The notes beneath the pieces were generated by a model. It saw only the letters and a list, made by a program, of their open reading frames with translations. It had not been told where the DNA came from and searched no databases. This document shows positions 14,458 to 60,162 of a DNA stretch of 64,000 bases, piece after piece. Every line of letters starts with the position of its first letter. Position 1 is the stretch's first letter. A program made the position numbers and the translations under genes. Origin of the DNA: Bugula neritina (Eukaryota; Animalia; Bryozoa); NCBI GenBank assembly GCA_964035545.1, contig OZ037769.1, positions 1,240,001-1,304,000 of the forward strand. Direction: 5' to 3'.

Positions 14458-17400
14458 ATGATGTTGACTGGAATTTTGTTGTGTCTACTAGTTATACCAG
14501 TTCTAGTAGTCAACTCTTACTCTCCAGGTATGTGTAGTGTAAGTAGCAAGAGTTAATACAGTATACTTTTCTAAAACTAATGCTGAAAACACTTCTCGGG
14601 AAAACAGTAAACAATGTTTATGGTGATTATGTCTGTAGGTTTTTCTTTTTTACCAGAGTTGTAAAAATGTGGCAACTTTACCTAAACATACAGTTTTATT
14701 AGAAAGCAAAGTAGAATATCAAAAGGAATCCCATCAACTAAATCTGGAGATTTCAGAGTTTTATTACATACTAAAATCAGTATATGGGTACAATGACTAT
14801 AATTCCTTAGTTCTTTTATCAGTGTACAGCCTTAATATGAAATAAAAAATACGTAAAATAGAGAATGACTATTGTATGCTACTACATCTGAGCAGAAGCT
14901 GTTGAGTTGGTGCAGTAACTAAGTTATATATACAGAATATAATACAGTCTGACAATTCACAAATTTTTCTACTTATAACGCAAACAGTGAACCTAGCCAA
15001 AGAGAGGGCCACGCAGGCAAGCACCGTCTTTGGTAATCGTTATTCTGCACACAAGGCAGTAGATGGAGACACTGACACATTTTTCTACAGTGCTGAGAAA
15101 CCTGATGATTGGTGGAGAGTGGATCTTGATGATGTAATACTTGTTAGAAGAATAGTCATTGACACTGGTGCTAGTAAGTGTTGATCTCTGAAGGCAAATA
15201 AAACATTTTCCAAGTTAATACAAGTAATACCAGTAACCATCATTGTCAGCTCATATTGCTTTAATTGTTTTATAGGGCCTTCTGCTACCATTATATACAT
15301 TTATATGAAAATGAAATAAGTTGTGTATTTAAATTGAGGTAATGTCTATAAGCTTTTACTGCAAGTGTGAAAACTATACTAACTTGGCTGTTTAATGGTT
15401 AGACACTGAGATAAAGATTGACTATACAAGTGAATTATCATTATATTACATAGTGGTTCACAATGCTATATACTGTATAAAGTACACAGGCTCATAAGTT
15501 GTGTTGAATGCTTAGTTTATGATGACAACATATTGTGAATGAGGCAGTATAATTAAAATTAGTATAGAGCTAATTAGGTTTCTGCAAACACTATAGTGTT
15601 TTGGTAAAAAAATAGAGAAAATAAAATATAAACTCTAGTTAAACATGCATCTTTGTACTTGGATTATTGAACATATAATATGTTCAATAATGCAAGTATA
15701 AAAAGATGCATGTTTAACTACAGTGTGATATGTTGTCTTCAAAATAGTGTGAAATATCATGCCATTGTATACAATGGCATGATATTTCACACTATTTTGA
15801 AGACAACATATCACACTGTACATCATAAAAAGGTAAAAAAACACAATAATCCAATGCATACAATATTTGTACGCAATTGTAAACAATAATTTTGTCTAAC
15901 TTTTCTATTTTTAGCTTCAGGATTCACCAATGTCTTTATTCTATCAACATGTTTGAATAAACCCACCGATGTACCTCACCCAGAGAGTTCAGACTGGAGA
16001 GTTCTACAGTCTGGAGTAACACGCACAAGTCAATCTGCTTCTACCTTGTTCAAATTTGACTTTGGTATAGATGAGAATGTAGAAGCTAGACAGATTGCTC
16101 TCTATAGTGCTACTGGTGGGTTACAGGTCGCTGAAGTACAGGTCTATGATGCAGGTGAGTGAGCAATCTGCTGAATATCAATTTACTGCCCAGAAATTTA
16201 CTACAATTTTTTCTATCGATATGGAGGTGGTTTTTAGTTGAAAAACTAGAACGCTGCTTAAGTATTTGTATAATAACCTTAAATTTTATCAGGTTTCAGT
16301 GTGTGTTAACATATGTAATGTAGAAATTAAATAATATAATTTTCAACTGAAATTTATATATTATTATTGAATGTAATGTAGCTTGTTGAATTGACAACAC
16401 ATATACCATACAAATTATACACCATTTTAATTAATACACTATAATATAATAAATTTACATCCAGTTTATCTACATTTTAGATGTGAATAAAATATAGTAT
16501 TTGATCTAGGGTACCGTTTCTTCCATGCTATAGCCTTAATTCTTAATTATATATGATAGAACCATTATAGTTAAATATCACCTGTTCTTAATAAAAACTC
16601 TAAATCACGTGAAATACATTCATACACACCTATATCAGACTCTCCATCAACTGCATGGTTAGTTTATTAGTCTGCCAGTATAACTCACTTACAGATTACT
16701 CTTACTACTGTATCACTTACCAAAGCATGGTCACCTTATTCTCTAAACATAGGGAGAGGAAAACCCACCAAATCGAACAATTTATACACTAAATTTAATG
16801 AGTGCATAATAAATGAACAAATATTTGTAAAGTGGTATTTTTAGAAATGCTTAAATATAATATTTTTCAGTGAATATAGCTGAAGGAAGATATACACACA
16901 GCAAGACTCAGTATAACATATACAGAGGCAGTGGGAAAGCAGTGGATGTAAACCCTAGGACATCTTATAGAAGTAAAGACAAACCTGATCAGTGGTGGAG
17001 AGTGGAGTTGGATGAGACTGTATATGTTAGAATACTAGCTATCCGTAATAAAGGTTGTGAGTATAATATTTGTGTTAATAATCTACAAAACAGCTTATTT
17101 GCTACTTAATCAAAACTTGTATTAGAGAGTTGAAATCATTGCCCAACTAGTTTAGGGTACATTTTAGCATAAGGTAGAGGCATTTTTTAAAAAAACAAAG
17201 ATTATCAGCAGAAAAGTGATAGAATGACATTTGTCAAACTACTTTAAATATTTAGGATTAGGTTTTACTAAATTTAGTTGAGAAAATTTAGGTTTCCTTC
17301 TTTAAACATAATGTAAATAGCTTTATCTTCTACTATTTTCACTCTAAATACCCATAAGAATCTTGGAAAATAGCATACAACTTTGTTACAAACAATTTAA

Positions 17401-20400
17401 CTATTCAATAAAAATCCCCTTTGTTATATTCAGTTCAATTCAATAATTCAATAAAAATCCCATTTGTTTTACTTAAGCTGAGAGGTTTAAAGACGTATCA
17501 ATCCTCTCATCAACACACTCCGCCATAACAGAAGATCCAACACCTACAAGTTCAGAATGGACTCTGGTCATGTCTGGGATATCACGAGAATCAGATATAA
17601 GCTCTACAGAACTTACATATAATTTTGATATAAGAAATGAGTTACAAACTAGACACATTGCTCTCTACAGCTCTAATAGTATTGGACTGAGCATGCTAGA
17701 GGTTCAGATATTTGTATATGGTAAGTGGTTTGTTAGTATGGTTTAGTTTATAGCAGCTCAGCCAGTTTGTATTGTATTGTTTGTATTATATATAGATATA
17801 TATATATATATATCTATATATATATCTATATATATATACATATATATATTTAATTTTAGACTTGGTGCTTACATGGCAAGACTCCTCAGCTGTTCTGACA
17901 GCAACCAAAAATTCATGTGTGACTCTCACATGGAAGCGGCCAGAGGCAGAATTTGGTGAAATATCTAATTATAGAGTTAGTATTTATTACTTGTACTTAC
18001 TATACTTACTATATAAATTTATTATTTTGAAATAAGTAAAGGTTAGTTAAATTGATCATTGAATAACTGAAAGTTTATTAAAATATCTGAATATATGAGT
18101 ATATGAATAATTTGCTTTACGGCAATTCTCTTATTTCTTATCGAATAATATATGAATAATATAAGACTTTGGCTTTTGAGCTTTGATTGCATGTTCTGCA
18201 ATGTTTTATAAACTCAGTTATAAGCTATGCCCTTAAACATAACTGACCACCAAATTGTAGGTTTTGCTTGGTTTTTGTGTTTATAGTATCACCCCAATCA
18301 TTTCTTGTGTGAATAATTTCAATGTTAAAGTTTATTAAAATATATGAAAATCTATGTTTAGTACAAGTGTACTTCACAAGATGACTGGACTATCACAGAG
18401 AACACTGACTTACAGACACAGATATGTGGATATCCTCTTTCTACAGATGTACAGTGTGAGCTGGAAGCATGGAGCAGTCATAACTACAGTTCAATTACCA
18501 CCTCTGTCGTTCAACCCCGTTGTACAGGTATATAGCCTGACATAGAAGTCATTTAGGCAATCCGTTTTTCTATGTAATATAGGTCTGATTATTAAAATAA
18601 TTTGCTTATATTATCTGACATTATTATTGCAATGACCGTATAGTGAAATTAACTATTCAAACTTTCCAAAATTTTCGTCATACTAAAAGAATGTTTTATA
18701 TAAATAATGTCAACATAACTACTTATTTCAGTTCCTATTAGAATATACCTGAGTTTGTTACAAACATGCTTCAAATAATTTAATTAGAAGCCATAATTTA
18801 TTTCAGCTCCTTCAAAGCCAACAGCAGTTAAATTAACAAGTGCCACACCAAATAGAATGGTGAGAGATGGTAAAGTTCAACTAATGTATTCTGTACAGTG
18901 GACTGTAAGTATTATTGGATAAAGTGTAATGTTAAGATTTTCGTTTGATAGTCACAAAATGACGATTTGGATACTGCCCATTCCAAAACACTTCATTTAT
19001 TATAAGAAAATGTTTTCAACATGCTCAAATTTTGTATACATACTATAGCAAACTTACATAAATATACTTGTAAAAGTAAAATAAATTATTATAGTTCAAT
19101 AATGACTTAACATATAGCTATTTTTGTCAAAACCAGTTAGAACAAATTTAGAAAACATTATAGAACAGTGTAGGAACTCTTCCATTTAGCACATATTTTT
19201 ATTTCCCTCTTTGGTCTTTTTAATGAGGTAATGATTCACAATTGTATATTTCCATTTCTTGTTTTAGGCACCCCAAAGTTCAAACTGTCAAAGTATAACA
19301 GGATATGATGTAAGATATCCAACAACTGAATCTACACCTACAAAAGTCAGTAGTACCAGTACTAGCATACTGACAGATGGTGATGTGGAGATAAATTTCT
19401 CCGTTAGAGCTAAGAATAATGATGACCTTTACTCAGACTATGAGACAATTGTGTTTACATCTGATAAATTAGGTGAAATTTACCTGCAAATTGTTTTTTT
19501 AGTGTCATGGAGTTATTTATGCATAACAAATAATTTGCCCATGTTAGTTTGTTGTGAATGGAAAACAAAACTCTTTCAAAACCTTCTCATTTGAAAGGTC
19601 CAATTTGGAATGGTACTCTCCAGCTTCTTATCCACCCTTCTAGTAGTGAGTGTGTTTCTCTATCATGGACTCTACCAGATTATTCTAATGGTGATATACA
19701 AAAGTATGAGGTGAGATATTCTCATTTTATATAGAGTTTGTGTTAAACATTTTTTTTTGTAGGCTAATTCTGTGTTATTCAGCTGACTAATAAAAGAGTT
19801 TTCAGTTCTCATTGAAATGTTTCTAGATCAAGTGTACAGGTCAAACAGACTGGACAGAAGTTGAGTCATCTAAACTAGACACACTTGTCTGTGGACATTC
19901 TCCAGACACAGAAGTAGAGTGTACAGTGAGAGCATGGAATGAACAGACATTCAGTGATATCATTACATCGGATAAAGTCAAGACCTACTGCTCAGGTACA
20001 GTTCTTATAGGACATTGAAAAATATTATGTATATTAAAATCTTGTGTTGCATTTCTCACTAAATTTGGCTGAAAACAATTTTTTATCTAATTTCATCATA
20101 AGTATAAGACATTTTTACTGAAAAAATGTAGCAATTTCAGAACATACACTTATATAGCTTCTGAAGCTTATTTAGGCAACGTGTAGACTATTTTTAATGC
20201 TTATTAGCTTGTTAGGATCCTTGCTAAGAAGCCTAATTTTTGTCTCTAAAGAATTCACATTTATCTTTAGCTCTTCTATAAGCCAAGCACTTACTATTAG
20301 TAATAATTAAATAATAATTGATAATAAATAAAACGAATCTAGCTAGTACGTCTCTCTACCAACTATATTAACTCGTTTTTAACATAATTAATGTTATCAA

Positions 20401-23400
20401 TAATTAAAGGTAACTTCAACCAATATGAGTGATTCTGAAACCATCAGTGTATTTTTGAAAATAAAATAGTTTTAATAATAGATTTTAATGGAGCAAGCAT
20501 TTTATCAGATGTAAGTCTAATTTTTTTTACAGGTTCTACATCTCCAAGAAATATTCAGTTTAAAGATGAAGGTGTAAAATTAGAGAGTGACAGAAGAAGA
20601 AGAGAATACCTCATTACTTGGCAGGTCTGTGTACTATCCAGCTTATCAAATAGCAATGAAATAACTGATATAAGTATTCTTTCAAGTAAAGTAACTTAAT
20701 TAGTTTACAATAAAATGTGTTCTATTACTGATGATAGAGAAATATTTGCGCAAAGCTTTTTTTCCATTGTACCTTATAGCTGCTGCAGTTTTAACCAATG
20801 AAAACCCATTCTCATTCTACTGTTTCAATCTTATTCTAATAAGATTCCATATTTGTTTTTTTTTGTACTTTTTTGCATAACAGGCCCCATCTACAACAAA
20901 CTGTGACAGTATAGCAGAGTATGAGATAAGATTTCCAACACCCTCTTCTGATATAATAACAAATTCTACAAATATGACAGTGTTTACCGAAAGTGATGTG
21001 GTGGTCACTTTCTGGGTTAGAGCTGTGAATAATGCTGGAAATATATCTGAACCTCGCATTAGAAATCTTACTACTGCTTTTTTCAGTAAGTCATTCTATC
21101 AAATCTATGCAAAATGCACATCACTCTGAATAAGCCTTCAGTCACTATTTTATGCAACCAAGGCTGAAAAACAAACCAAGATTTAAATTATATGTTGCCA
21201 TGTTCAAGCGTTTTTAACATCAACACATAAAGTTTTTAGTATTTTAAATTTGTAATTCATTTAATGTAATTGGCAGTTGTTAAAATTTCCAAATTTTCAT
21301 GTTTTGCTTTTTTCTCTGTTACTGCTAAAAAGTTTTTTGGCAGCTTATATCGCAATTGCTGTAAAAAAAATCTAATTTAATTTTACTGATGAAATTTGCA
21401 AGGTAAACAATAATGTCACTGCAAGACTATCAAAAAACTGGTTTTAAAATTTTTCACAACTGCTTTATAACGTATAAAATACATATGTAATACATGCCCG
21501 TGTGTGAGTGATGGTACGGTTGTGTGTGTATGTGTAGGTGCGTATGCCTATGTGTGTAATTCCATTATAATAAGAGTTTATATAATAATCAATACAAATG
21601 CATTCTCTATTATTATAGCTCAAGATGAGCAGAGAGATGCAATCAGAGAGCTTCATTTAGACTCAATGAGCTCTTACTGCGAGTTTAACCCCGCCGATGA
21701 TCTCTCTCGTATCAAACTTCTATCTGAAGCAGAAGATTTAGTAGAGAAGTCAGTTGGCTGGACAATACAGGTAGATTGTATTGATGGATTACTGAGGAAG
21801 TTTTCATCAGAAGATGGTTTTACTGCTACATGTAATCCTACGATTGTTACCAATGATGATGGGTACGAAATACTAAAGTTTTATTGGGATCTCTCTCCTT
21901 TGCACGAGAATTGTGGTAATGGTAAGTGGTATTGAGATCTAGTTAGCACTATATTGTTTGTCTCCTTATAATTGTTGACTTTGGTAAAATGTCATTGTGT
22001 GGGAATTAATAAGGCTAAATTTACTAAACATATGCTTTCTGTTTCTTGGATAATTCCTCTTCTTAGACTTCAATTCAATAACATCTAAGTTTGGCGGTTT
22101 TACATTGCATGAAAATGTAATAAATAATTGCTTGGACTCTTGTTTTGTGTAGTTTTATTGCTCAAATATATCATTGGCAAGAGTGGTAGTTTTACAGAAC
22201 CGAGCATTAGAAATTGCACTCAATCCTTATTAAATTAGATGTAATAATATGAATAAATGAAGCACTCAAAGAGTTTTTGAAAATCTCTTTTATCTTGTGT
22301 TGATTGTGAAAGTTGTATGTTGATGTAGAGCCAGTTTGCACTCTAGTCAGTACTACCTACGACTACCCAGTCTTGGTAAATACATCTAATGAAGCGGAAC
22401 TCGAGGACGAGATTCATATGGAGCAAAGTGACGGACGAGTCCAACTCACTCGGCTACGCTTCTACCCAGTAGGCACCGTGCAAGCGTACAATGTTACAGA
22501 TGATGCTTGTGGTAATGATTCACTCACTCTTTCTGCAAACTCAACAACATGGTCGGTATGCGAGGCACCAGACAACCTTGAACTTCTCCTAGATAGTGAT
22601 AGACCCGATGAGATGAGAAGATTCTTTTGGTTCTTCAACTATGGCCTTTGGTCCCAGCCACCTCCAGAATGCGGTAGAGTTTTCTGATACTGAGTAGTGA
22701 GAAGCACCAGAAATTAGTGATGAGATGAATATAAATGTTGCGATTATTATTTGAACTTCTGTTATTCAGCTCAAGAGCTCAAACCTCTAGTCTACTCAGA
22801 CATAATGTTTAAAGTATTTTGCAAAAGCATGCAATTTAAGAAGATGTGAATAGCTGAAAAAAGAAGTCCAATTAATCTTTTCATTATGAATTAAAATTAC
22901 TTTCATACAGTGTATATGGTATATTTTTGGTTCACGTCCTATTTTCCTGATATATGTAATAGTGGAAACTTTTTTAAAACTTTTAAAGATGCAAAGGTAA
23001 AAAGTGGAAGATGACATTGGTAGTTTACCTTGGCGTTAAACAATGTTTCTCAAATGCCTATCAAGAGTTCTTCTACCTCTAAGGAGAACTTTATGTCCTG
23101 GCAACGATTTACAGATAATCTCATTTATATTTTATATCATCCTTCAGCTTTGGTGCTGTTTTTAAAAACCTTAACCCATTAGTGCTAAGAACTTTGGTAG
23201 CAAAGTTAAGAAAACTAAGTTGTCGTACCGCTAGCATACTATACTGTAGCCTTATGATTGTAACTTGTCTGTTCACTTTGATATCTAGTGGTAAAGAGAT
23301 GCTCAACTCCTAACAGAGCATTACTCGGTTTCTCTGACAATGATGTCTTCAGTAGTGAGCAAGACTTCTACCAGTTGGGTGAGACTGTAAATGTGTCGTG

Positions 23401-26400
23401 TGCAGATGGTGAGAGTCAAACTAACCAGAAAGTAGACAGCGAGGCGATTACCTGCCAGTAAGTAACCTGCTGCCGTTTCATTCTAATACTTTATTGGTTT
23501 ACAACTTTCAACGCTGAGTTATTTTTTCAAAAAGAATTGATATATAATAGTATTAGACTGTAACAAAAAAAGGTTTATATTATTATATAAAACATACCTA
23601 GTCAATAACAGCAGTAGTACCAATAACAATAGTCAATACCAACAGCAGCAGCAGCAACAGTAGTAGTAGCAGTATTAGCAGCAGCAGTAGCCACATAGAC
23701 CACCATTGTCTTTTTCCAATAACCTTTGTGTAGCCAAATTAAACTTCACCTCTTTTTTTAATTATTCCATTATTATTCTGCAATTGTGACATTTTAGCAA
23801 CTTTTCTCATGCTTGTATTATGATCAAATTTTGCCACAGATAAGCTTCAAAACTAAAAACTCACAACAGATGCTACAAGTCTGCAGGTCTGAAAGGCCTA
23901 ACTGATGCAAATTTATTCTGTACATAGTAGCATAAAGATGCATCTTTAATTTCATCAGTTTGATGTCTGATCTTTCTTTGTTTAAGGCTGGATGTTGATA
24001 AAAATGCTGTATTCCATAGAGACTCTGATTCTGCTCTGAGGCTACATTTTTGTAGTGAGTGAATTTATTTAATTTAATTATTTTCTAACGTATACTGTTT
24101 ATGTAACAGTTTCTCTTTACCAATTTTGAACTACATAATAAAGCTAACTTTACAATCTGCATTCACTGCAATTTTAAATGTCGCAGTAAACACATTTACA
24201 AAGAAGTAGCACCAATTTGTATGTTTTTACCTTGCTTTGGGTACACAAGATTAGCCAATCATGTTGGTGTTTTGCAAACTTTCAATTACTTTTGCTGTCT
24301 ATTATTTTTCAAAGTTTCTCATAACAATAAATGATAATCTGCGTAAATATATAATGTTATCTGACAATTGTGAACCTACTAATGAGTACTCAACACTCTT
24401 ATCTGACAGGCGTTAAGACGTGTACCTTACCATCTCTGAGTACTCTCGGTTTTGGAGACTACGCTGAGCTGGTTGAGTTTGATGAACCGTATAGCCTGTG
24501 GGAAACTGTAGTTGTAAGATGTCAGGATAGGAGCGCGCAGAGCCACCCTGATGTTGATACTGAAACTTTGACATGCGTGTAAGTTATAAACGAGCTAACT
24601 CAAGGTAAATATATATAAACATCCCTTTCTGTTTTGCTACTATTCGGTTTCACAGTTATAGGTAGAAATATAGAAAAAAAATGCATAAAAATTATATAGT
24701 ATAATCACTATCTGGTTACCCCAAACTTATTGTAATGCTCAAGTACAGTAGAACACATTTAGTTGCAAAATTTGCATAGTTCTGCAATTGTCTTTATGAA
24801 ATGATAGATTGCGTAATTTAGCAATTTTGCTTTAGAGAAACCATCACAAGCATAAAATGTAAAACATTCAACATAAATATCCCATGCCCTGTGAAGTGTG
24901 AATATAGTACGGTTTTAGTCCGTTTGCAATGTCAATCTGTTTGAGTTATAAAAATGATTGTTGTAACAGTGACTTAGGAGAAGAGAATTATGGATTTCAA
25001 AGAGAAGTTAATTCTTCCTTGCAAATGGAAGAATGTCAACGTAAGTTGTATGAGTTAACTTACTTCAAATTATATTCTGGTAATTTACTTTCTATATAGT
25101 ATAAAAAAAATTATGTAATAAGGTGAAGAATACTTTTAACCATTACTATTGATCCACTTATAAAAAAAGAATTTAAGTTTTTCACATTTCTTGCATTACT
25201 TCAATGTGAAAAAAATTGGTTAGACAAGATATTTATGTCTATGGAGCAAACAAACTAAAAAGCATATTGAACAGCTTATTGTTGTAAACTGGGAGCCTTA
25301 TGTTAAAGTTGGTAAAAACGTATTGAAAGGCTAATAAAGTATTTCTACCATTATTTTGCTCATTTTCAAAGTAATGCAGTTAGCTTATTTCAAAGTCAAT
25401 CACAAAGTCATTAGACCTGTCAACAAGTGTTGATTGTGTGTCATGAGACGTGTCAACAGGTGCTCCTTGCCATCAACAAAAAATATTCTAAAAAATTGTT
25501 GTTTTTCCTAATATTTAGCTTGTTTTTTAGCTATAAAATGTCCCATACCTGAAAACATTGCCATTAATGTGAGTGAAGCAGCCCTTCTAGGCACTAAGGC
25601 TATAGTTAGTTGCCCTGACATAGACATGGAGTACGTGAGTGAATGTGTGAAGTCATCAGATGACTCCGTGGAAGGAGTTTGGATCCCCACCCCCACCTGC
25701 CGTAAGTTCCTCTTGATTTAGCTTTTTTTGACTCAGCTTTCTATTTGTTTTCCAATCAAAAGAAAAAGTTTCTCCAGTAAATTTTCTTTATAATATAATA
25801 AAATAGTCATGTGTTTCATTCAATAGACAAATTACAATAATGTGATATCTACCACTTTGCAGAAGGTTTTTATGTTCAAGAGTATGCACACTTTGTCTAC
25901 TCAACAATATATGCTCATCAACTGTACTTGCAGGCTCCAAGACATGTTGGCATTTTATGGCTGACTCAACTCTTTACGAGTATGAATTACAATATGGCCG
26001 CCATATAATTGGTGAGCCAAGACCGGTGCCACATAATGACACACTTACCTTTGTATGTCCGCCAGGAACTGTGGGATACATGCGAAATGAGCTCTCATAT
26101 CGATGTACTGTGTAAGTATGTTTCCTTAGTGTAGGTGAAGCTGCAGTTATCTCCCTCTGTCATTTAGTAACTATTCTTTTGTATCACAAGATAGAATCCA
26201 TAGATTGTAATATATATTTTATAGTATGTATTATAAACCCAACATATATTGCATACTACAACTTATAGTATATGTGATGGTGTGCAGTGTGAACCCTACA
26301 TTAGTTTAATGTTATCATTTCAATTACAGGGGACCTGGTGGGTTAGGTCACTTTGAAGCTCTGGAGCCTGACGTTAAACCCGACTGTCGAGGTATGGAAT

Positions 26401-31360: not shown

Positions 31361-34300
31361 ATAATAGATATGCAGCTGTTTTCATACTCACTGGATCAAA
31401 TTTCTTTTGATCTCATTCATTTATGATTAGTAAACTCTTTTTCTCCAGGTATATATCACATATAGTTCTGTACATCTATCAAATATATGAGTTTATGATC
31501 TAAATAGAAGCACATAAAGATACAGATATTTCAGGCACAGTCTCTTAGAGGAACAGTATAATCTAAAAATTGCAGTTGTTTTTCGTAGTCACTGCATGGT
31601 TCAATCTTCTTTTGATCTCATTCACTTATGATTAGTAAAATGGAGAACGATTATTGTATGCTACTATACATCTGAGCTGGAGCTGTTGAGTTGGTGCAGT
31701 AACTAATTTATATATACAGAATATAATTATACAGTATGACAGTTCACAAATTTTTCTACTTATAACTCAAACAGTGAACCTAGCCAGAGAGAGGGCCACG
31801 CAAGCAAGCACCCTCTATGGTAATGGTTATCCTGCATACTTGGCAGTAGATGGGGACACTGACACATATTTCTACAGTGCTGTGGTACCCGATGATTGGT
31901 GGAGAGTGGATCTTGATGATGTAATAATTGTTAGAAAAATAGTCATTGACACTGCCGCCAGTAAGTATTGATCTCTGAAACCAAATAAAATAGTTTTCAA
32001 GTTAATACAAGTAATACCAGTAAGCCATCATTGTCAGCTCATATTGCTTTAATTGTTTTATAGGGGTTTCAGCTAATATTATATACATTTATATGAAAGT
32101 GAAATAAATTATGTATTCAAATTGAGGCAATGTCTATAAGCTTTTACTGCAAGTGTGAAAACTATACTAACTTGGCTGTTTAATGGTCAGACACTGAGAT
32201 AATGATTGACTATACAAGTGAATTATCATTAGTATATTACATAGTATTTTACATTGCTATATACTGTATAAAGTACACAGGCTCATGAGTTGTGTTGAAT
32301 GTTTAGTTTGTGATGACAACATATTGTGAATGAGGCAGTATAATTGAAAATAGTATAAAGCAAATTGCTTCTGCTAACACTATAGTGTTTTGGTAAAACA
32401 ATTAGGGAAAATAAATTATAAACTCTAAGTAAACATGCATCTTTGTACTTGGATCATTGAACGTACAATGGCTTAATATTTCACACTATTTGAAGACAAC
32501 AGATCACACTGTATATCGTGAAATACTAAAAAAGCACAATAATCCAATGCGTACAATCTCTGTACTATTTTAAACAATAATTTCGTCCAACTTTTCTATT
32601 TTTAGCTCCAGCATTTACCAATGTCTATATTCTATCAATTTCTATGAATAATCCCACTGATGTACCTTACCCAGAGAGTTCAGACTGGAGAGTTCTACAG
32701 TCTGGAGTAACACGCACAGAAAGTGCTTTTTATACCATATTCAAATTTGACTTTGCCCTAGATGAGAATGTAGAAGCTAGACACATTGCTCTCTACAGTG
32801 CTACTGGTGGATTACAGTTCAATGAGGTAGAGGTCTATGATGCAGGTGAGTGAAGTAGTTGCTGAATGTTAATTTACTGCCCAGAAATTTCTTACACCAT
32901 TTTTTCTATCGATTTGGAGGTGGTTTTTAGTTGAAAAACTAGAACGCTGTTTAATTATTTGTATAACCTTGAATTTTATCAGGCTACAATGTGCGTTAAC
33001 ATATGTAGTGTAGAAATTTCTATGTATGTTATTTAATAGCTATTTATTGTAAGTTCTTAGTGTTTTTCTGCAAATTTTATAGATCAAAATGACTCTTAGA
33101 GTGTGCACTACAATTGCCACCCTATAGATTTTTACAGTTTTGATGTTTTGTACCCATTTTCGAGCTATTTACATAAGCAGCTAGAAAAGTGCAACTCTTG
33201 TATTTTTATGCTTCCAAAATTCCTGGCTTTTGTCAGCCACAAAAAGATGAACAGTGAACTTTGACTTTGTGCATGACATCATGATATTATAAAGCATGAT
33301 TTCCTTCCATAATTTGAAATCTGTGAGCTTTTACTATAGGTGCACACTTGAGTGCTGCGCATAGACAAAATGAGAGCTGTAAATCTTACTTCAGAATCAA
33401 AGTCTGTCGTAGTTTTTTTACATAAAGAAGGTTTTTCAATCCGAAAAATATTTGAAAAGGGTGGCATAGCAAAGACAACCGCATATCAAATTATCAAGAA
33501 GTTTATTGATTGATTGATTGATTTTATTTCTATCACTAACATGATATATGTTGTGAAAAAAAGGTGTTAAATACCGATGCCCGTGATATTAAAAATGGCA
33601 ACAGTGTAACATACATGGCTTAAAAATAGGAGTAAAAAGTCTCTGAGGCTAGAAGCTCAATTAACAAAAATTATTGTGCAAGTTTATTTAGCTTGAGTGC
33701 TGCCTGGCGTATAAAAGAATCTCTGCCCCAAGTGCTTCTGTATTTAATAATAATCCATGCAGTTTATCTAGCTTGTAGCGTACAGATTGTGCATTGGTCA
33801 GTATGATGGCTGGCAGGGGAGCTCTTGAGTTTTTTCCTATTTTTCTTGCTCTAAGTATTCCAAAGTCAAAATTTTTAACTAGAGTTTTGAATTGTCAATT
33901 TCATATATCCTTCAGATAGTCTCTGTTAATAGAGGTTTTAACTTCCAGCAGAGAATTCATGTTCATGTATGCTAGACCGTCACACCTCTTAGTTGGTATA
34001 CATGAGGGGAATATGAGTAGCACCAGTAATAACAAAAGCTTCAAAAGCTAAATAGCTATGAGTAGCACCAGTAATAACAACGGCTGCAATAGCTGCGCCA
34101 TTATGTTAGCAGAGTTGTGAGAGCTATTGAAAACACAACCTCTCTCTATGGAGACTGGCAGTGTAGCAGACCGACCTCGAAGTGAATGACCAGGAACCAG
34201 CACACCCAGAGATGACAAAGTTCTCATTAGAATCAGCAAGAAGGATTGCCACAAGACAAGTCATGAGTTGGCAAAAGAATGGTCAGAATCAACAGGAACA

Positions 34301-45674: not shown

Positions 45675-48600
45675 ATGATGTTGACTGGAATATTGTTGTG
45701 TCTACTAGTTATACCACTTCTAGTAGTTAACTCTTACTCTCCAGGTATGTGTTATAGTGTGAGTAGCAAGAGTTAATATAGTATAATTTTCCAAAACTAA
45801 TGCTGAAAGCACTTCTTTGAAAACAGTCAACAATGTTTATGGTGATTATGGCTGTAGGGTTTTGTTTTTTACCAGAGTTGTAAAAAAGGGGCAACTTTAA
45901 ACAAACATATAGTTTTATTAGAAAGCAAAGTAGAATATCAAAAGGAATCCCATCAACCAAATCTGGAGATTACAGAGTTTTATTACATACTAAAGTCAGT
46001 ATATGGGCAAAATGACCATAATTCTTTCGCTTTTTAATCAGTGTACAGCCTTAATATAAAATAAAAGATACCAACTGTTTTCATACTCACTGGATCAAAT
46101 TTCTTTCGATCTCATTCATTTATAAATAGTAAAATAGAGAATGACTATTGTATGCTACTAATCTGAGCAGAAGCTGTTGAGTTGGTGCAGTATCTAAGTT
46201 ATATATACAGAATATAATACAGTCTGACAATTCACAAAGTTTTCTACTTACAACTCAAACAGTGAACCTAGCCAAAGAGAGGGCCACGCAGGCAAGCACT
46301 GTCTACGGTAATTCTTATCCTGCATACTGGGCAGTAGATGGGGATACTGGCACATTTTTCTACAGTTCTGAGAAACCAGATGATTGGTGGAGAGTGGATC
46401 TTGGTGATGTAATACTTGTTAGAAGAATAGTCATTGACACTGCCGCTAGTAAGTGTTGATCTCTGAAGGCAAATAAAATGTTTTTCAAGTTAATACAAGT
46501 AATAACAGTAAGCCATCATTGTCAGCTCACATTGCTTTAATTGTTTTATAGGGGTTTCAGCTAATATTATATACATTTATATGAAAGTGAAATAAATTAT
46601 GTATTTAAATTGAGGCAATGTCTATAAGCTTTTACTGCAAGTGTGAAAACTATACTAAGTTGGCTGTTTAATGGTTAGACACTAGGATAATGGTTGACTA
46701 TATAAGTGAATTATCATTAATATATTACCAAGTGGTTTACAGTGCTTTATAAATTATAAACTCTAGTTAAACATGCATCTTTGTACTTGAATCATTGAAC
46801 ATACAATGGCGTGATATTTCACACTATTTTGAAGACAACAGATCACACGTACTGTACACTGTAAAGTGGTAAAAAGCACAATAATTCAATGCCAGCAATC
46901 TTTGTAAAATTGCACACAAAAATTACGTCCAACTTTTCTATTTTTAGCTCGAGGATTTACCAATGTCTCTATTCTATCAACTTCTAGAAATAATCCCACT
47001 GATGTACCTCACCCAGAGAGTTCAGACTGGAGAGTTCTGCAGTCTGGAGTAACACGCACAGAAATTGATCCTACCATATTCAAATTTGACTTTGCCCTAG
47101 ATGAGAATGTAGAAGCTAGACACATTGCTCTCTACAGTGCTACTGGTGGATTACAGTTATTTGAGGTAGAGGTCTATGATGCAGGTGAGTGAAGTAGTTG
47201 CTTAATATCAATTTAAGGCCCAGAAATTTACTACAAAATTTGTTCTATTGATATGGAGGTGGTTCTTAGTTGAAAAACTAAAACACTGCCTGAGTATTTG
47301 TATAATAACCTTGAATTTTATCAGGTTTCAGCTAGTGTGTTAACATATGTAATGTAGAAATTAAATAATATAATTTTTAACTAAAATTTATATATTATTG
47401 AACGTAGCTTATTGCTGAATTGACAACACATGCATATACAGTACATGTCATACATCATTCTGATTATTACCCTATAATATAATAAATTCACATCTAATTT
47501 ATCTAGATTAATCTAGACGTGAGTGAAATAGTATTTGATCTAGACTACCGTTTCTTCCATGCCATAGCCTAAATTCTCAATTATATATAATAGAACCATA
47601 CCTTCATATCACCTATTGGTAATTGAAACTCTAAATCATGTGAATTGCATTCATACATACCTATCAGACACTCCATTAACTGGTTAGTTTATTAGTAGGC
47701 CAGTATAATTCACTTACAGATTATTCTTACTATACTGTATCACTTACCAAAATGGTAACCTTATTCTGTATTAACATAGGAAGAGGAAAACCCCCTATAT
47801 ATATCAAACAATTTATAGCCTACACTACATGAATCAAGAGTGCATAGTAAATAATCAAATATTCCTAAGATGGCATTTTTTAGAACTGCTTATACATTTT
47901 TCAGTGAATATAGCAGAAGGAAGATATACATTCAGCAAGACTCATTATAACATATACGAGGTTAGTGGGAAAGCAGTAGATGTAAACCCTAGGTCGTTTT
48001 ATAAAAGTGAAGACAAACCTGACCAGTGGTGGAGAGTGGAGTTGGATGATACTGTATATGTTAGAGTACTAGCTATCCGTAATAAAGATTGTGAGTATAA
48101 TATTTGTGTTAATAATCTACAAAGCAGTTTATTTGCAACGTAATCAGGACTTGTATGAGAGTTGAAATAATTGCCCAACTAGTTTAGGGTAAATTTTAGT
48201 ATGAGGTAGAGGCATTTTGTAAAAAAAGAAAGATTACCATTGCAAAAGTGATAGAATGACATTTGTCAAACTACTTTAAATATTTAGGAATAGGTTTTAT
48301 TCAATTTAGTTAAGAAATTTAGGTTTCATTCTTTAAACATACTGTAAATAGCTTTATCATCTACTATTTTCACTTTAAATAAAATCTTGGAAAATAGCAT
48401 ACAACTTTGTTACAAACAATTCAATAATTCAATAAAAAGATCCTTTGTTCAATTCAATTCAATAATTCAATAAAAATCCCATTTGTTTTACTTAAGCTGG
48501 AAGGTTTAAAGACGTATCAATCCTGTCATCAACACACTCCTCAGTAACAGATGATCCTACACCTACAAGTTCAGAATGGACTATGGTCATGTCTGGGATA

Positions 48601-51800: not shown

Positions 51801-54800
51801 TGAATTTCAAGTGCAAAATGACTCATTTTCAAGTGATGTATTTTTATAAAAATCACAAAATTTATTTCCTTGGGTACACAACTCTTTATCTCAAAACATT
51901 TCTAGGGCCCCAGATAACACCACGAGATTTCCAGTTGCAATTTATCAACTCGAGTTGTATAAGGTTGTCATGGCAACCACCGAAATATCCCAATGGACCA
52001 ATCACACAATATGAGGTAATCGGTTACACAACGAATACATATACATTGTAATTATTACATAATTATTATGACGTTTGGTGATGCTTCATTTTTCAAAAAT
52101 GTACTCAAAATGTTAAATTAGGATTAAATTAGATCAAATGAAGATATGAGATAAATTTAAAGAATATGTTATATTAGTATAATATACTTTAAATTTATCT
52201 CATTTTTTGTCTAAAAGAGTCATAAATTGAAACCTAAACTTGTGACTCATTGTAGTACAAGTGTACTGGACACAGTGACTGGCTCATTGTTGAGAAGGCA
52301 ACTCTTGACTCTGTAAAATGTGGATATTCAGCCAATCAGCTGGTAGAATGCGAGATATTTGCTAGAAATAGCAAAGGAAAGAGTGATAGTGCCAGAAAGG
52401 ATATAAGAATTGTCTGTGCAGGTAAACTATCTATTGTCAAATTATGACAACTTTTTTTGTTTGCGTTAAAGTATCGGAAACTTCAGTATAAATGTAGTTC
52501 AAATTAAGTCCTCAAATTATCTGGATGGAATATATGTAGTGCTATTAAGGTAAATCTATATAGACAATAATGTGATGTAACTATTCAATGATGTAGTATA
52601 ATCTCTTCTCATAACATATTTCATATTGCAGTAATACATTAGGAACCTAAGTATAAATGTAGTATAATCTCTTCTCATAACATATTTCAGCTCCAGAGTT
52701 CCCCCTTGATTTGTCTCCATACATCCTAGAAGTATCTTCCATCAACTCTGATGGTCTGGCAGAAATCAACTTGACTCTACCTAATTCCTCAGTGGTAGGT
52801 TTAATTTAAAGTACTAAATTACTTTTCAAATTGCTGCCTATGAATAGTTACTTCATTTTTTGCGAAACATTTTGTATACAAACTTGAGTAAAGTCATCCA
52901 AAGAAATCCGCTACGATATACACAAAAAAAATTAAAATACTTCTGCTTAAATGTTTTTTTATGCTTTTTTTCTCGACTTATCACCATTCGTATTCTATGA
53001 TAAGTTAAATAAGCTTACTTTGTGTTTTAAAACCAAAACATAACTTTAATTTTGTCTCAATTTTTACAGATCAGAATAAACTGTGCCTCACTCACAAGTC
53101 TAGAGTATAAACTCAGTGATCAAGACAACTACACGAATGCTGGAGAAGTTATTTATGGACTACAACCCTACACTAACTACACTCTGTATATCAGAGCTAC
53201 TAATAATGAGCAATTTACTCAGAATCTGACTTGGACACTGCTGACAAAACAGCTGGGTAATTATTGCTTAAATTACAAAATATCAAGACTATATTGTATA
53301 TATTGTGTTGAACTGGGCTCTTTTAGTATTTATAAAAAATATTTATTTGTTTTCAATAAATTATCTACCAAAATGACTTGATCTGAAATATTATCCTTAC
53401 TATTTTAGCTCCAAGTGATTCTCCTAGAATAATCACAGACTTTGAAGCCAGCTGTGTGAATTTAACCATTTCTCCACCTGAGCATCCTAATGGACTTTTA
53501 ACACATTACTCTGTAAGTTTTAAACTGAAATGAGGGTGTTAAAAGCTTTAATATTTTCCAATATTCAAGTGGCAATAAAACAGCATTAATCACGTTTTCA
53601 AAATGTCTTTTCTTCTATAGTATGCATGCAACGAGGTGAACATAGGAATAGATGAGAATCTCACCAAAGTTGTTGACAACATATCTGTGAGTTATGAGGA
53701 AAAGGAAACTAAACTATCCCTTTGTAACCTGACTTCAGCAACTAGAATTAGATGTACAGTAAGAGCTGTGAACAGTGCTGGAGAAAGTCCAGTGAAAGTG
53801 GTGGATGGATACACCAGACTTAAACGTAAGTATATGGCCACATTTAAACATTTAATCATATCAAAGTTTGCAGTAGAAAAAATTTGAGAGAAAATTTGAC
53901 GGAGCAGACTTTAAAGTATGAAGTCAAAATTTAAGTTTGTTTTGTTGAAAAACCAATGTAAAAGATCAGGAAAATATTGCATGATTTTACTTTTTCTCTC
54001 TATTAGCGTTTCCAAATGAAGATTTTATTCAGACTAAACCAAACTGTTCCAATTGTCAAGATATGGTTTATTACACTGTGTAAATATTTTTACTTTTTAA
54101 ATTTATTAATCACATAAATTAAAGCGATTATTCTTTAGAGATTATTTTATTTAAATTGTTAAAAAAAATTCATCACAAATGAAGTGTTAACTATAATTAT
54201 ATTTTAGTGAAAGAGGGAAATGATATTATAGCACAAATAGCGCCATCTTCTTTTCCTGGGGAGCCGCTTTTAATAACCATTCCCACACCTTTTTTTGAGA
54301 ATGGAAAAGTGAGGTTAGTCTAGTTTATATAATACACAAATTCACATGATGTTATAGTAATTGACAGGAAATGTCAGTTAAACACTCATCCAAAGATCGC
54401 AATGATTGTAATGTTTTTTACAGCAAGTACCAAATAGTTCTCCAACAGCAATCTCAACAGAACAGAAAGAAGAGGGATTTCTCATTAGAAGGTGACGGAT
54501 GTAACTCAACTCAACTATTCAACTACTTTGTGTCTCAAGAGAAAGGGTTAACATGTTACATAACAGCAGAGATAGATGTAGAGTCAGATGGTGATACAAC
54601 AGTCAATATTGGTGATGGTAAAACATATGGTGGGTATGAGAATGTGGATCTGGTTCCTGGAGCAGACTACTTCTTGATGGTTGTCGTACTAGTAAAGGTA
54701 GAGGTAAGAGTTTGCTGAATGCTAAATTTGTTGAAAAATTATCATGCATGTGGATGCTTTTGACAGCGCAAACAATTAGCCCTATTTCCTTGCTATAAGC

Positions 54801-56166
54801 CGAGGTAAATGTATATCTACTACATTTTATTATTTAGTACAGTGAATATTTCTGCACGGGATTATTCAACTAAATTTTTACCAGAAAATAAAAAAGCTTG
54901 AAATTATTGTTTTAAATATTGACCACAATTTTATTAATTATTGGATTTTGTTCTATTTTTAGGCAGCTGAGGATTTATTACAATATTTCTTGCCCCATGT
55001 TGAGTTCAAAAGTATGTATGAAGCTACGTTATCCATAAAAATTAAAAATGCTTATATGTTGCATTGCAGCAGTTTTTACCTAAGCTTCTCTTCATGCACA
55101 ATTATTATGTAGCATTACATAATATATTCTCAAATTATCTATACTAATAATGTAACTATATACATTGCTGTCTCATGACAGATACTCTTTCACTGAAGTG
55201 TATGGAGCCTCCACCAGTAGCCAACTCAGATCTCATAATCAGTGATACAGTCAACCTGGGTTCTGTGGTTATTTACTCTTGTAAAGTTGGGTTTACTAAA
55301 ACTCAGGGAGAGCAGCTGGTCTGTCAACTGATGGGAGATGAAGCTGAGTGGGTTGGGGAGTTGACAGTCTGTAGAGCAGCTGACAAAACAGGTAACAAAA
55401 CAGGTGCAACTATAAATCGTGCATGTTTAAATTGTGTCTATATGTTTTAATTTATTTTCATGTTATTTGTTTACCTGTCAGCTCGGGTTAAAATCACTCT
55501 GTTATGCTGTGATAAAACAAAAATAATTACTATCACGTACACACATCAATTAATTGCTTTTTTTAAGAAAAATTTTCTTAGAAAAATTCTCTTGCCGTAA
55601 AGCTACATGTAAATATAAAGCAGCCATAAATTGAGCATATATGTACAGTATATATTCACTAGAGCTTTCAATAAAATTTAAGCATTCATGAAATGCGATC
55701 TATAATGCTTCTTTTAGGACTGATAGCTGGTTTGGTCACAGTCTCTTGTCTAGTGGTGGGTCTGGTTGTGGTGGTGGTGGTTCTGGTATGCAGAAGTCAG
55801 AGAAGTACAGGAGCACCGCCCTCAGAAGTAGTGAATCTGGACACAATAAACCAATCAAAAAGAAGTGAGTATGAAGAACCAGACCTGATGTCTAAAAGGA
55901 CTTCTAGTAAAGTGATAGATGACACATACAGCAAGGTGGATGATGGAACCTATAGCAAGGTTGATGACAGTTATAGTAAGGTGGTTGATGACACATACAG
56001 TAAGGTGGTTGATGACACATACAGCAGACTTGATGGACCTGAGGACACCCATAATTATGATAAGATTGAGATTTCTAACAGAAATAAAGATAACAAACCA
56101 TCATCTTCTAATGTAGATGCAGCAAGTTGTGATCCTCTTTATATCAATAGACTGGGTTGTAATTAG
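45675..56166 (+). CDS. G4: complete receptor-class paralog of G3 (same architecture, no Tc1 in the lectin intron)
   Basis: ATG 45675. Lectin-like exons 46263-46448, 46948-47184, 47905-48090, 48498-48737. FN3, juxtamembrane (ORF 54371-54718) and sushi (ORF 55175-55450) exons colinear with G3. TM/tail exon 55718-56166. Confidence 0.9.
55918..56067 (+). repeat. Same tyrosine-motif coding repeat and ITAM in G4
   Basis: ORF 55693-56166: [50 protein letters not shown]. Confidence 0.9.
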
Positions 56167-57725: not shown

Positions 57726-60162
57726 TTAATAGCTGTGGTATAATTTCTTCTCATGTGATTGTGAATATAACTCAGTCTATTCATATATTACTGTTCTATT
57801 ACAGACATACTAATGAATGCTCAAACTAAATATAAAATATATCATGATTACTAATATGCCCATTGAGTTGTGTTATAACATTGTGATGTAAAGCCTAAAA
57901 ACTAACTTAGAAAAGATCTCTAAGACCAGCAAATTTACTATTGATAAGGAAGTTGCTTTAACTTGAAACTTGACTTGTATATTACTTTAGCTTGATTCCA
58001 AATAGCTATAGCCTAATTTCTACTCATGTGACTGTGGATCTAACTACTTCTCTGTCTATACAAATTCTTTTGTTCTATTTTCTTTTACTAATGAATTCTC
58101 AAACTGAATAGAAAGCCTTGTATTAGCAAAAGCAATAAAAAGCTGACAAAAGATCTATAGAACAGATCTATTATTATATAGAAACTCAACAATGAACAGG
58201 GAAGTTGTTTTAGACTAAACTTCTTTACACACAATATATTCTATTGTGAGTTAAACTATAATATGTTCTACATAGCACTCCAGTATTAGAGGGTAGAGTA
58301 GGTTGAAATACAGCCTAGAGTAAAATTTTAAAGTAGACTATTCATATTGTGTTGAGTGAAAGAAGACAACTTATTAGTTACAGTATCTATGAAAGTCAAC
58401 TAAGCAGAAGATGATGTTGACTAGAATATTGTTGTGTCTACTAGTTATACCACTTCTAGTAGTAAACTCTTACTCTCCAGGTATGTGTGTAGTGTGAGTA
58501 GCAAGAGTTAATACAGTATATTTTTTGTAACTAATGCTGAAAACAGTTCTTTGAAAACAATCAGCAATGTTTATGGTGATTATATGGCTGTAGGTTTTTG
58601 TTTGTTACCAGAGTTGTAAAAAAGGGGCAACTTTACAAAAACATATAGTTTTATTAGAAAGCAAAATAGAATATCAAAAGGGATCCCATAAACCAAACCT
58701 AGAGAATACAGAGTTTTATTATGTACTAAAGTCAGTATATGGGTAGAATGACTATACTTCTTTAGTTTTTCAATCAGTGTACAGCCTTAATGTAAAATAA
58801 TAGATACGCAACTGTTTTCATAATCACTAGACCAAATTTCTTTCGATCTCATTCACTTATGATAGTAAAATGGAAAAATGTTATTGTATGCTACTATATC
58901 AGTGAACCTAGCCAAAGAGAGGGCCACGCAGGCAAGCACTGCCTATGGTAATGGTGATGGGTATTCTGCAAACAAGGCAGTAGATGGGGACACTGACACA
59001 TATTTCTACAGTGCTGTGAAACCCGATGATTGGTGGAGAGTGGATTTTGATGATGTAATAATTGTTAGAAGAATAGTCATTGACACTGCAGCCAGTAAGT
59101 ATTGATCTCTGAAACCAAATAAAATTGTTTTCAAGTTAATACAAGTAATACCAGTAAGCCATCATTGTCAGCTCATATTGTTTTAATTGCTTCATAGGGG
59201 TTTCAGCTAATATTATATACATTTATATGAAATCGAAAAAAAATATGTATTTAAATTGAGGCAATGTCTATAAGCTTTTACTGCAAGTGTGAAAACTATA
59301 CTAACTTGGATGTTTAATGGTTAGACACTGAGATAATGGTTGACTATATTATAAGTGAAATATCATTAATATATAACGTAGTAGTTTACAATGCTATGTA
59401 TACTGTACGAAGTACACAGGCTCATGAGTTGTGTTGAATGCTTAGTTTGTGATGACAACATATTGTGAATGAGGCAGTATAGTTGAAAACAGTATAAAGC
59501 AAATTGCTTCTGCTAACACTATAGTGTTTTGGTAAAACAATTAGGGAAAATATATTATAAACTCTAGTTAAACATGTATCTTTGTACTTGGATCATTGAA
59601 CATGCAATGGTTTGATATTTCACACTATTTTGAAGACAACAGATCACACTGTATATCGTGAAATAGTAAAAAAGCACAATAATCCAATGCGTACAATCTC
59701 TGTATACTATTTTAAACCATAATTTCGTCCAACTTTTCTATTTTTAGCTCCAGCATTTACCGATGTCTTTATTCTATCCACTTCTATGATGGAACCCGCT
59801 GATGTACCTCACCCAGAGAGTTCAGACTGGAGAGTTCTACAGTCTGGAGTAACACGCACAGAAAGTGCTTTTTTATACCATATTCAAATTTGACTTTGCC
59901 CTAGATGAGAATGTAGAAGCTAGACACATTGCTCTCTACAGTTCTACTGGTGGACTACAGTTCAATGAGGTAGAGGTCTATGATGCAGGTGAGTGAAGTA
60001 GTTGCTGAAAATTAATTTACTGCCCAGAAATTTTTTACACCATTTTTTCTATCGATTTAGAGGTGGTTTTCAGTTGAAAAACTAGAACACTGTTTAATTA
60101 TTTGTATAATAACCTTAAATTTCATCAGGCTACAGTGTGTTAACATGTGTAATGTAGAGATT

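Follow-up and report, generated by a model that had tools for sequence, protein, structure and literature searches.

A family of putative receptor genes in the bryozoan Bugula neritina appears to have been diversified at one end of its outermost domain. The genes lie in and around a window of 64,000 nucleotides (GenBank assembly GCA_964035545.1, contig OZ037769.1, positions 1,240,001 to 1,304,000 of the forward strand; "the window" means this whole stretch, and coordinates count from its first letter). The element in question, at 14988-16154, encodes the first lectin-like domain (D1) of the gene copy G2. A preliminary description, made from the sequence alone, had noted in four paralogues a nearly invariant framework interrupted by four short variable patches and had proposed diversifying selection on a ligand-binding face. 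The explanation favoured here, with a probability of roughly 0.6, is a tandem family of type I receptors with a conserved F-type-lectin-fold scaffold, whose binding-end loops have been diversified by selection, insertions and deletions (indels) and exchange of patches, and whose members likely differ in ligand specificity. It builds on what was observed of gene anatomy, fold family, patch positions, nonsynonymous excess and mosaicism, and on how differently the second lectin-like domain (D2) of these genes behaves. From these, we infer ligand binding by the variable end, an effect of the variation on specificity, and expression of the genes.

The DNA of the window is eukaryotic and AT-rich, its open reading frames (ORFs) are short and its introns clear, and 14988-16154 is bounded exactly by an AG acceptor at its start and a GT donor at its end. 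The lectin-like domains in the window that are discussed below are as follows.

G2 D1 exon 1: 14988..15173, + strand, phase 1 to phase 1, from splice sites, Pfam and PDB matches
G2 intron within D1: 15174..15914, + strand, GT..AG, 741 bp, falling in loop L3
G2 D1 exon 2: 15915..16154, + strand, phase 1 at both ends, from splice sites
G2 D2: 16871..17725, + strand, exons 16871-17056 and 17478 to about 17725, lectin-like, 40% identical to D1
G3 D1: 31775..32845, + strand, exons 31775-31960 and 32606-32845
G4 D1: 46263..47184, + strand, exons 46263-46448 and 46948-47184
G5 D1: 58903..59988, + strand, exons 58903-59094 and 59748-59988, with an extra T in 59869-59874

A search of the window's own assembly revealed seven tandem copies (G1-G7) on contig C5, spaced 11-20 kb apart. 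Four of them (G2-G5) lie inside the window, G1 just upstream, and G6 and G7 downstream. All D1 acceptors and donors are kept in the seven copies. The possibility that the copies are uncollapsed haplotypes was ruled out, as they lie on one contig, 11-20 kb apart, with 6-17% intron divergence. The material of this study is this one genome and one independent contig (L030, 2205 bp, from Joint Genome Institute metagenome 3300002729), on which D1 and the beginning of D2 of a related gene are encoded. Compared with the array, its introns are about 20% diverged, its framework is unchanged and its patches differ again; a sibling species or a distant paralogue is its probable source. A metagenome scan for more copies or alleles yielded nothing confirmed.

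The framework motifs and the four patches were recovered by tblastn and alignment where the preliminary description had placed them in G2-G5. The two-codon insertion reported in patch 1 of G5 is real, and is carried by G1 and G6 outside the window as well. Patches 3 and 4 had been given for G2, G3 and G4 only; they are present there, and G5 had been left out for no stated reason, yet its frame shifts inside patch 3, where the run at 59869-59874 has six T as against five in G3. This extra T is either a young pseudogene lesion or a homopolymer assembly error. Among the seven copies, further variable spots were found in a tract specific to G1 and G7 after the WWRV motif, in the exon-junction loop and at residues 74-77.

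Sequence searches for the fold were run exon by exon, and the joined D1 codons were used only in alignments. Alone, D1 exon 1 passes the gathering cutoff of Pfam F5_F8_type_C (31.9 bits, cutoff 28.2) and scores 31.0 bits against a cutoff of 27.8 for the NedA-like F5_F8_type_C_2. Its best PDB matches were the striped-bass lectin FBP32 (4.3e-6) and eel agglutinin (7e-3), followed by chitosan-binding CBM32 modules; exon 2 alone gave no meaningful PDB match. Full-domain relatives in public sets are only about 30% identical to D1. The closest of them, P0040:152-292, was modelled with high confidence (predicted local distance difference test 94, predicted template modelling score 0.89). In Foldseek, this model was best matched by F-type lectin domains (SpX, lectinolysin, eel agglutinin, FBP32; template modelling score about 0.8), ahead of CBM32. 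A profile of the closest full-domain relatives matched FBP32 at 3.8e-52 and eel agglutinin at 1.2e-23. There is thus strong indirect support that D1 would adopt a fold of the F-type-lectin/CBM32 type, the structural evidence coming from the 30%-identical relative.

The secondary structure of D1 was mapped from the same model. Five loops, in G2 domain numbering L1 (10-22), L2 (25-40), L3 (58-67), L4 (96-106) and L5 (127-134), are placed at the top, binding end of the barrel because of the strand order in the model and the exit of both termini from the barrel's bottom (PMC5712786). Exon 1 of G2 encodes strand 1, L1 (15017-15055, patch 1), L2 (15062-15109, patch 2), the WWRVDL hairpin, strand 4 and the start of L3 (15161-15173). 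Exon 2 encodes the remainder of L3 (to 15931), strand 5, a long bottom loop, strand 6, L4 (16016-16048, patch 3), strands 7-8, L5 (16109-16132, patch 4) and the last strand. Variable columns are concentrated in these structure-defined top loops (31/60, against 27/83 elsewhere; Fisher p 0.017).

The HMMER alignment of exon 1 to eel agglutinin matches the residue numbers given in PMC5712786 for Lys16, Leu23, Glu26, His27, Asn35, Asp38, Phe45, Tyr46, His52 and Asp64. Patch 1 aligns with complementarity-determining region 1 (CDR1) of the eel lectin (Leu23 to Asn35), and the two-codon indel falls at the CDR1 apex. Patch 2 aligns with CDR2; the aromatics Phe45 and Tyr46 are kept, and a gap removes six residues, Cys50 and His52 among them. 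The counterpart of the eel Arg79-Asp81-Arg86 loop, the exon-junction loop L3, carries Gly/Ala and no arginine. Patches 3 and 4 and L3, judged by strand order, would lie at the same end as CDR1 and CDR2.

Does this end of the domain still bind fucose? F-type lectins carry the sugar motif H-X24-R-X-D-X4-(R/K) and the cation motif h2DGx (PMC5712786; PMC12221842). The sugar motif is absent from 8/8 D1 copies (the seven and L030): the His position is Tyr or falls inside the six-residue deletion, the first Arg is Gly/Ala, and the region of the second Arg is shortened and has no basic residue. The calcium motif is present, as A-V-D-G-D is invariant in all D1 copies; D2 fails it because A-V-D-V-N/D stands there. 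On sequence grounds, the loss of the triad argues against canonical fucose binding by D1. Because His/Arg/Arg is replaced by Tyr, Gly/Ala and a deletion, the ligand is not necessarily fucose; a different glycan or a protein could take its place.

The preliminary description had proposed site-model dN/dS (nonsynonymous over synonymous divergence) with recombination control as the check on selection. Codon site models were fitted with D2 as internal control and the D1 intron as neutral yardstick. Silent divergence among the seven copies is 0.13-0.14, and pairwise intron divergence is 0.055-0.167. Whole-domain dN/dS is 0.83-0.88 for D1 against 0.41 for D2. For the seven D1 copies, twice the log-likelihood difference (2dlnL) between models M1a and M2a was 26.2 (p 2e-6), between M7 and M8 26.4, and between M8a and M8 about 26. 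The nesting of the models is sound, since M7, M8a and M1a agree, as do M8 and M2a. The positive class comprises about 27% of codons at omega 3.3 (17-27% and omega of about 3.3-4 across runs). In D2, omega under M0 was 0.41 and M1a against M2a gave 2dlnL 0.17 (p 0.92), that is, no signal. As a separate observation, D2 is under purifying selection, and its few variable positions lie at loops homologous to the D1 patches.

The class with dN/dS above 1 survives the recombination controls. The 2dlnL of M1a against M2a was 34.5 with a separate tree and rate for each exon and 19.6 with a separate tree and rate for each of six segments. It was 21.2 when the G1/G7 tract was removed, 17.7 when gap columns and two columns on either side were removed, 12.3 when both were removed, and 10.1 (p 0.0065) when the tract, the L1 apex and all of L4 were removed. 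Adding the metagenome contig as an eighth copy gave 34.1. The 60 top-loop codons alone, with their own branch lengths, gave 17.4 (p 1.7e-4), with 34% of loop codons at omega 3.5; bottom loops and strands were not significant on their own trees. In simulations under the near-neutral fit, the maximum was 1.6 without recombination (four runs), and under extreme recombination nine of ten runs stayed at or below 3.2; the observed 26-34 tops all 14.

Of the 23 sites with a posterior above 0.9, 16 lie in top loops (Fisher p 0.004), and the selected columns 13 and 17 are the positions of eel Leu23 and His27. In the eel lectin, these two residues shape the pocket receiving the methyl group of fucose and touch subterminal sugars (PMC5712786). 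The pattern goes beyond chance: in pairwise comparisons, top loops have a nonsynonymous divergence of 0.183 and strands one of 0.061, and the gap in synonymous divergence is far smaller (0.186 against 0.117); only L1 (0.233) and L4 (0.364) have a dN clearly above the silent and intron rates. A patch-versus-framework comparison of dN/dS (1.92 against 0.26) was set aside as circular, because the patches had been picked for being variable.

The copies are also mosaics. Among D1 copies, 42% of informative site pairs fail the four-gamete test, and neighbouring sites are more compatible than shuffled ones (p 0.0005 in a permutation test similar to the pairwise homoplasy index). G1 and G7, which the introns place in different clades (with G2 and G4, respectively), share seven base changes within 17 bp, all nonsynonymous, and omega hits its bound in that segment. 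This tract (L007:1630-1656 in G1, L006:1624-1650 in G7) turns D-L-D-D-V-I into W-L-Y/F-K-V-T in the hairpin at the barrel bottom and replaces the Asp equivalent to that of the Asp64 salt bridge in eel agglutinin; a search of 22 other family loci turned up no donor. Patch 4 is common to G2 and G7, and patch 3 to G3 and G5. The four-gamete failures, the compatibility test and the shared patches indicate, therefore, that short gene conversion, or the sorting of old variants, contributes to the distribution of patches.

Several points weigh against diversification by selection at a binding end. The site models were fitted with our own codeml-like likelihood program (Goldman-Yang, F3x4) and not with PAML, the posteriors are naive empirical Bayes values from seven to eight sequences, and the models assume a single synonymous rate and single-nucleotide steps. 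Selection tests can be inflated by recombinant mosaics such as these copies, and one of the runs under extreme recombination reached 13.2. Without a tree, the loop-wide dN of 0.183 is about equal to the loops' own dS of 0.186 and is 1.27 times the domain dS (bootstrap interval 0.78-2.15), so that loop-wide pairwise dN/dS, at about 1.0-1.3, is not significantly above 1. Minimum-change counts give ratios below 1 (0.83-0.90). The alignment of L4 is ambiguous, and several changes span two or three bases. Seven of the 23 selected sites lie elsewhere, in the bottom hairpin, at one bottom-loop residue and at three strand positions. The assignments of loops and of a common face rest on the 30%-identical relative, on strand parity in its secondary structure and on the literature, with no coordinates used; the "ligand-binding face" itself is read from the fold, because the canonical His/Arg/Arg fucose triad is missing. 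Finally, the G5 copy is possibly broken. The preliminary proposal would have been refuted by dN/dS at or below 1 at these sites or by variable residues scattered and not on one face, and for the most part it withstood these tests. The site models and the clustering in loops support selection, and the proposal as a whole has partial support, falling short in the loop-wide ratio near 1, the sites elsewhere, the mosaicism and the missing triad. Patches 1 and 2 map onto CDR1 and CDR2 of eel agglutinin. The changes, described as mostly amino-acid altering with in-frame indels, do show a nonsynonymous excess in loops and indels at the L1 apex and in L4.

Much of this would be expected under relaxed constraint, a serious rival that has a real, if minority, chance of being correct. 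The loops would tolerate change and drift near neutrality, and conversion would keep the framework, with its silent sites, alike among copies, so that the loops are hypervariable by contrast only. The loop-wide ratio (0.99 against the loops' own dS), a dS about 1.6 times higher in loops than in strands, the minimum-change ratios, the demonstrable activity of gene conversion, the recombination-null run that reached 13.2 and the frameshift in G5 all speak for this rival. However, near-neutral evolution is rejected inside the loops with their own branch lengths (17.4) and with six trees and rate scalers (19.6), the observed values stand above all null simulations, and the homologous loops of D2 in the same genes give no such signal; the gap in dS between loops and the rest is based on few sites and may not be significant. 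A purely technical artefact, in which misaligned indel-rich loops, multi-nucleotide events or patches pasted from distant members are misread as bursts of nonsynonymous change, is unlikely. Patch 3 admits more than one alignment (AGT and GCT codons held in common are offset between copies), and the G1/G7 tract is of just this character, but the test stays significant after the column removals (p 2.6e-5 to 0.0065), no donor of the tract turned up among the 22 loci, and variable patches are seen again in the independent metagenome contig.

The variable end may alternatively be a protein-protein surface, homophilic or for a partner receptor, in a domain whose lectin activity has been lost; this is possible but doubtful. 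Along with the fucose triad in 8/8 copies, Cys50 and the Cys82-Cys83 pair are missing, and F-type lectin domains with a replaced triad, such as that of Drosophila furrowed, may have lost sugar binding (PMC12221842). CBM32 relatives, on the other hand, bind other sugars at the same end without the triad. The present evidence is compatible with either a glycan or a protein ligand.

In the favoured interpretation, the receptors are built of a signal peptide, two F-type-lectin-fold domains, FN3 repeats, a PTPRU-type membrane-proximal module, a Sushi domain, a transmembrane helix and a tail with tyrosine motifs. The beta-sandwich core and the calcium-site motif are held constant, and copies differ in the loops at that barrel end with which F-type lectins bind sugar. 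Three routes may have led there: selection favouring amino-acid replacements at some of the loop residues, in-frame indels at the L1 apex and within L4, and short conversion tracts by which existing patch variants pass from copy to copy, yielding mosaics. The outcome would likely be a germline-encoded set in which receptors of differing ligand specificity share one scaffold.

The remaining features of the receptor genes in the window are listed here.

G2 signal-peptide exon: 14458..14527, + strand, ATG at 14458 and phase-1 donor CAG|GTATGT at 14528
G4 3' part: 54365..56163, + strand, membrane-proximal PTPRU-type Fn3 exon, Sushi exon, and transmembrane and tyrosine-repeat tail exon

The same signal-peptide exon is also present in G3 (30981) and G4 (45675). 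D1 is predicted to be the N-terminal, membrane-distal domain because this exon joins D1 exon 1 in frame, provided that no small exon lies between them. In the complete copy G4, D2 is followed by FN3-like exons, a PTPRU-type Fn3 exon with an RKKR site, and the Sushi, transmembrane and tyrosine-repeat tail exons. Among its 3' exons, Pfam Fn3_PTPRU (1.1e-8) and Sushi (8.5e-6) are both past cutoff, and a hydrophobic stretch and the tail follow. In G2, the region 3' of the FN3 exons (window 21471-29180) contains cysteine-rich, weakly Sushi-like ORFs, and no counterpart of the PTPRU-Fn3, Sushi and transmembrane-tail exons of G3 and G4 was found there; G2 may have a different 3' end, or 21471-29180 may belong to another gene.

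The D1 intron falls in top loop L3, and so does not match the intron position in striped-bass F-type lectin domains, which are interrupted at a turn on the bottom side, close to where eel agglutinin has Glu123-Cys124 (PMC5712786). At the start of D1 exon 2 (window 15913-15920), two in-frame AG acceptors stand six nucleotides apart in 6/7 copies (not in G6), and their alternative use would drop two residues from L3. Directly after D2 exon 2 lies a (TA)n microsatellite of about 31 copies (window 17787-17849). This repeat follows D2 exon 2 in 6/7 paralogues, and G1 has a short remnant only (YIYIYI in read-through translations). The F-lectin exons of oyster bindin are likewise flanked by microsatellites, which are thought to promote recombination.

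Beyond the array, more than 20 further, more distant family members were found in clusters on C5 (about 0.47-0.51 Mb), C3 (7.1-8.1 Mb) and C8 (9.19 Mb), with 35-47% identity to D1 exon 1. Judged from these matches, the receptor family is large and dispersed in this genome. A search of public protein sets with the exon 1 profile returned no spliced full-length family protein, and the close relatives there are exon-sized ORFs (P0008, P0017, P0022, P0047).

Bryozoans are colonial animals that fuse with or reject their neighbours and carry specific bacterial symbionts, and the array, with an outermost lectin-fold domain that varies in its binding-end loops, provides concrete candidate recognition genes. 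In the literature searched, no bryozoan genes for self/non-self or immune recognition were found described. A tentative and rather speculative extension is that the array is part of a germline-encoded, combinatorially shuffled repertoire, in which loop variants at the F-lectin tip are exchanged by conversion and coupled to tyrosine-motif outputs (phosphatase outputs in sister clusters), telling self from non-self colonies or symbionts from pathogens. If true, this would be the first molecular recognition system described for Bryozoa.

Some elements of this picture are already known, namely the variable CDR1 and CDR2 of eel isoforms, selection and recombination in oyster bindin, and F-lectin domains of non-canonical type on membrane proteins. 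What appears to be new is the architecture of the receptors, the loss of the whole triad, diversity among tandem paralogues with conversion, and the phylum. In eels, isoforms (Anguilla anguilla agglutinin and A. japonica eFL-1 to 7) reach 68-78% identity and vary mostly in the two loops that surround the binding cleft, CDR1 and CDR2 (PMC5712786). They belong to the same fold family, are likewise several and germline-encoded, and have variable loops that align with patches 1 and 2. Unlike the bryozoan copies, they are soluble serum proteins of a single domain, in which His52 and the Arg loop are strictly kept; the domains described here are N-terminal parts of membrane receptors, have no triad and vary in three further loops. 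In the sperm bindin of the Pacific oyster, positive selection is clustered on the F-lectin binding face and accompanied by recombination, and some isoforms have a replaced triad (PMC5712786; PMC12221842). There too, F-lectin domains have been diversified by selection and recombination, but bindin is a secreted acrosomal protein of single-copy genes whose diversity lies in alleles and in alternative splicing of repeats, whereas here it lies among tandem paralogous receptor genes. Drosophila furrowed (CG9095) resembles the bryozoan receptors in being a transmembrane protein with Sushi repeats whose F-lectin-fold domain has non-canonical residues at the triad positions (PMC12221842). It is a single conserved gene, however, for which the literature covered reports no tandem family or hypervariable loops.

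Bacterial CBM32/CBM47 modules (Paenibacillus DD1/DD2, S. pneumoniae SpX, lectinolysin) share the beta-sandwich and bind ligands at the same loop end; exon 1 aligns gap-free to the chitosan-binding DD modules, and the model of the relative matches SpX and lectinolysin best. In contrast to the animal receptor family, these are sugar-binding modules of enzymes and toxins. A functional analogy is offered by the vertebrate natural killer receptors Ly49 and KIR, which also form tandem clusters with a variable ligand face on a conserved scaffold, gene conversion between neighbours and signalling through tyrosine motifs. Their folds are unrelated (C-type lectin-like or immunoglobulin), and their ligands are known. 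After the eel serum lectins and oyster bindin, the bryozoan array would be the third independent instance of the F-lectin scaffold being used as a module for variable recognition; in this one, the module belongs to a signalling membrane receptor and has no fucose triad.

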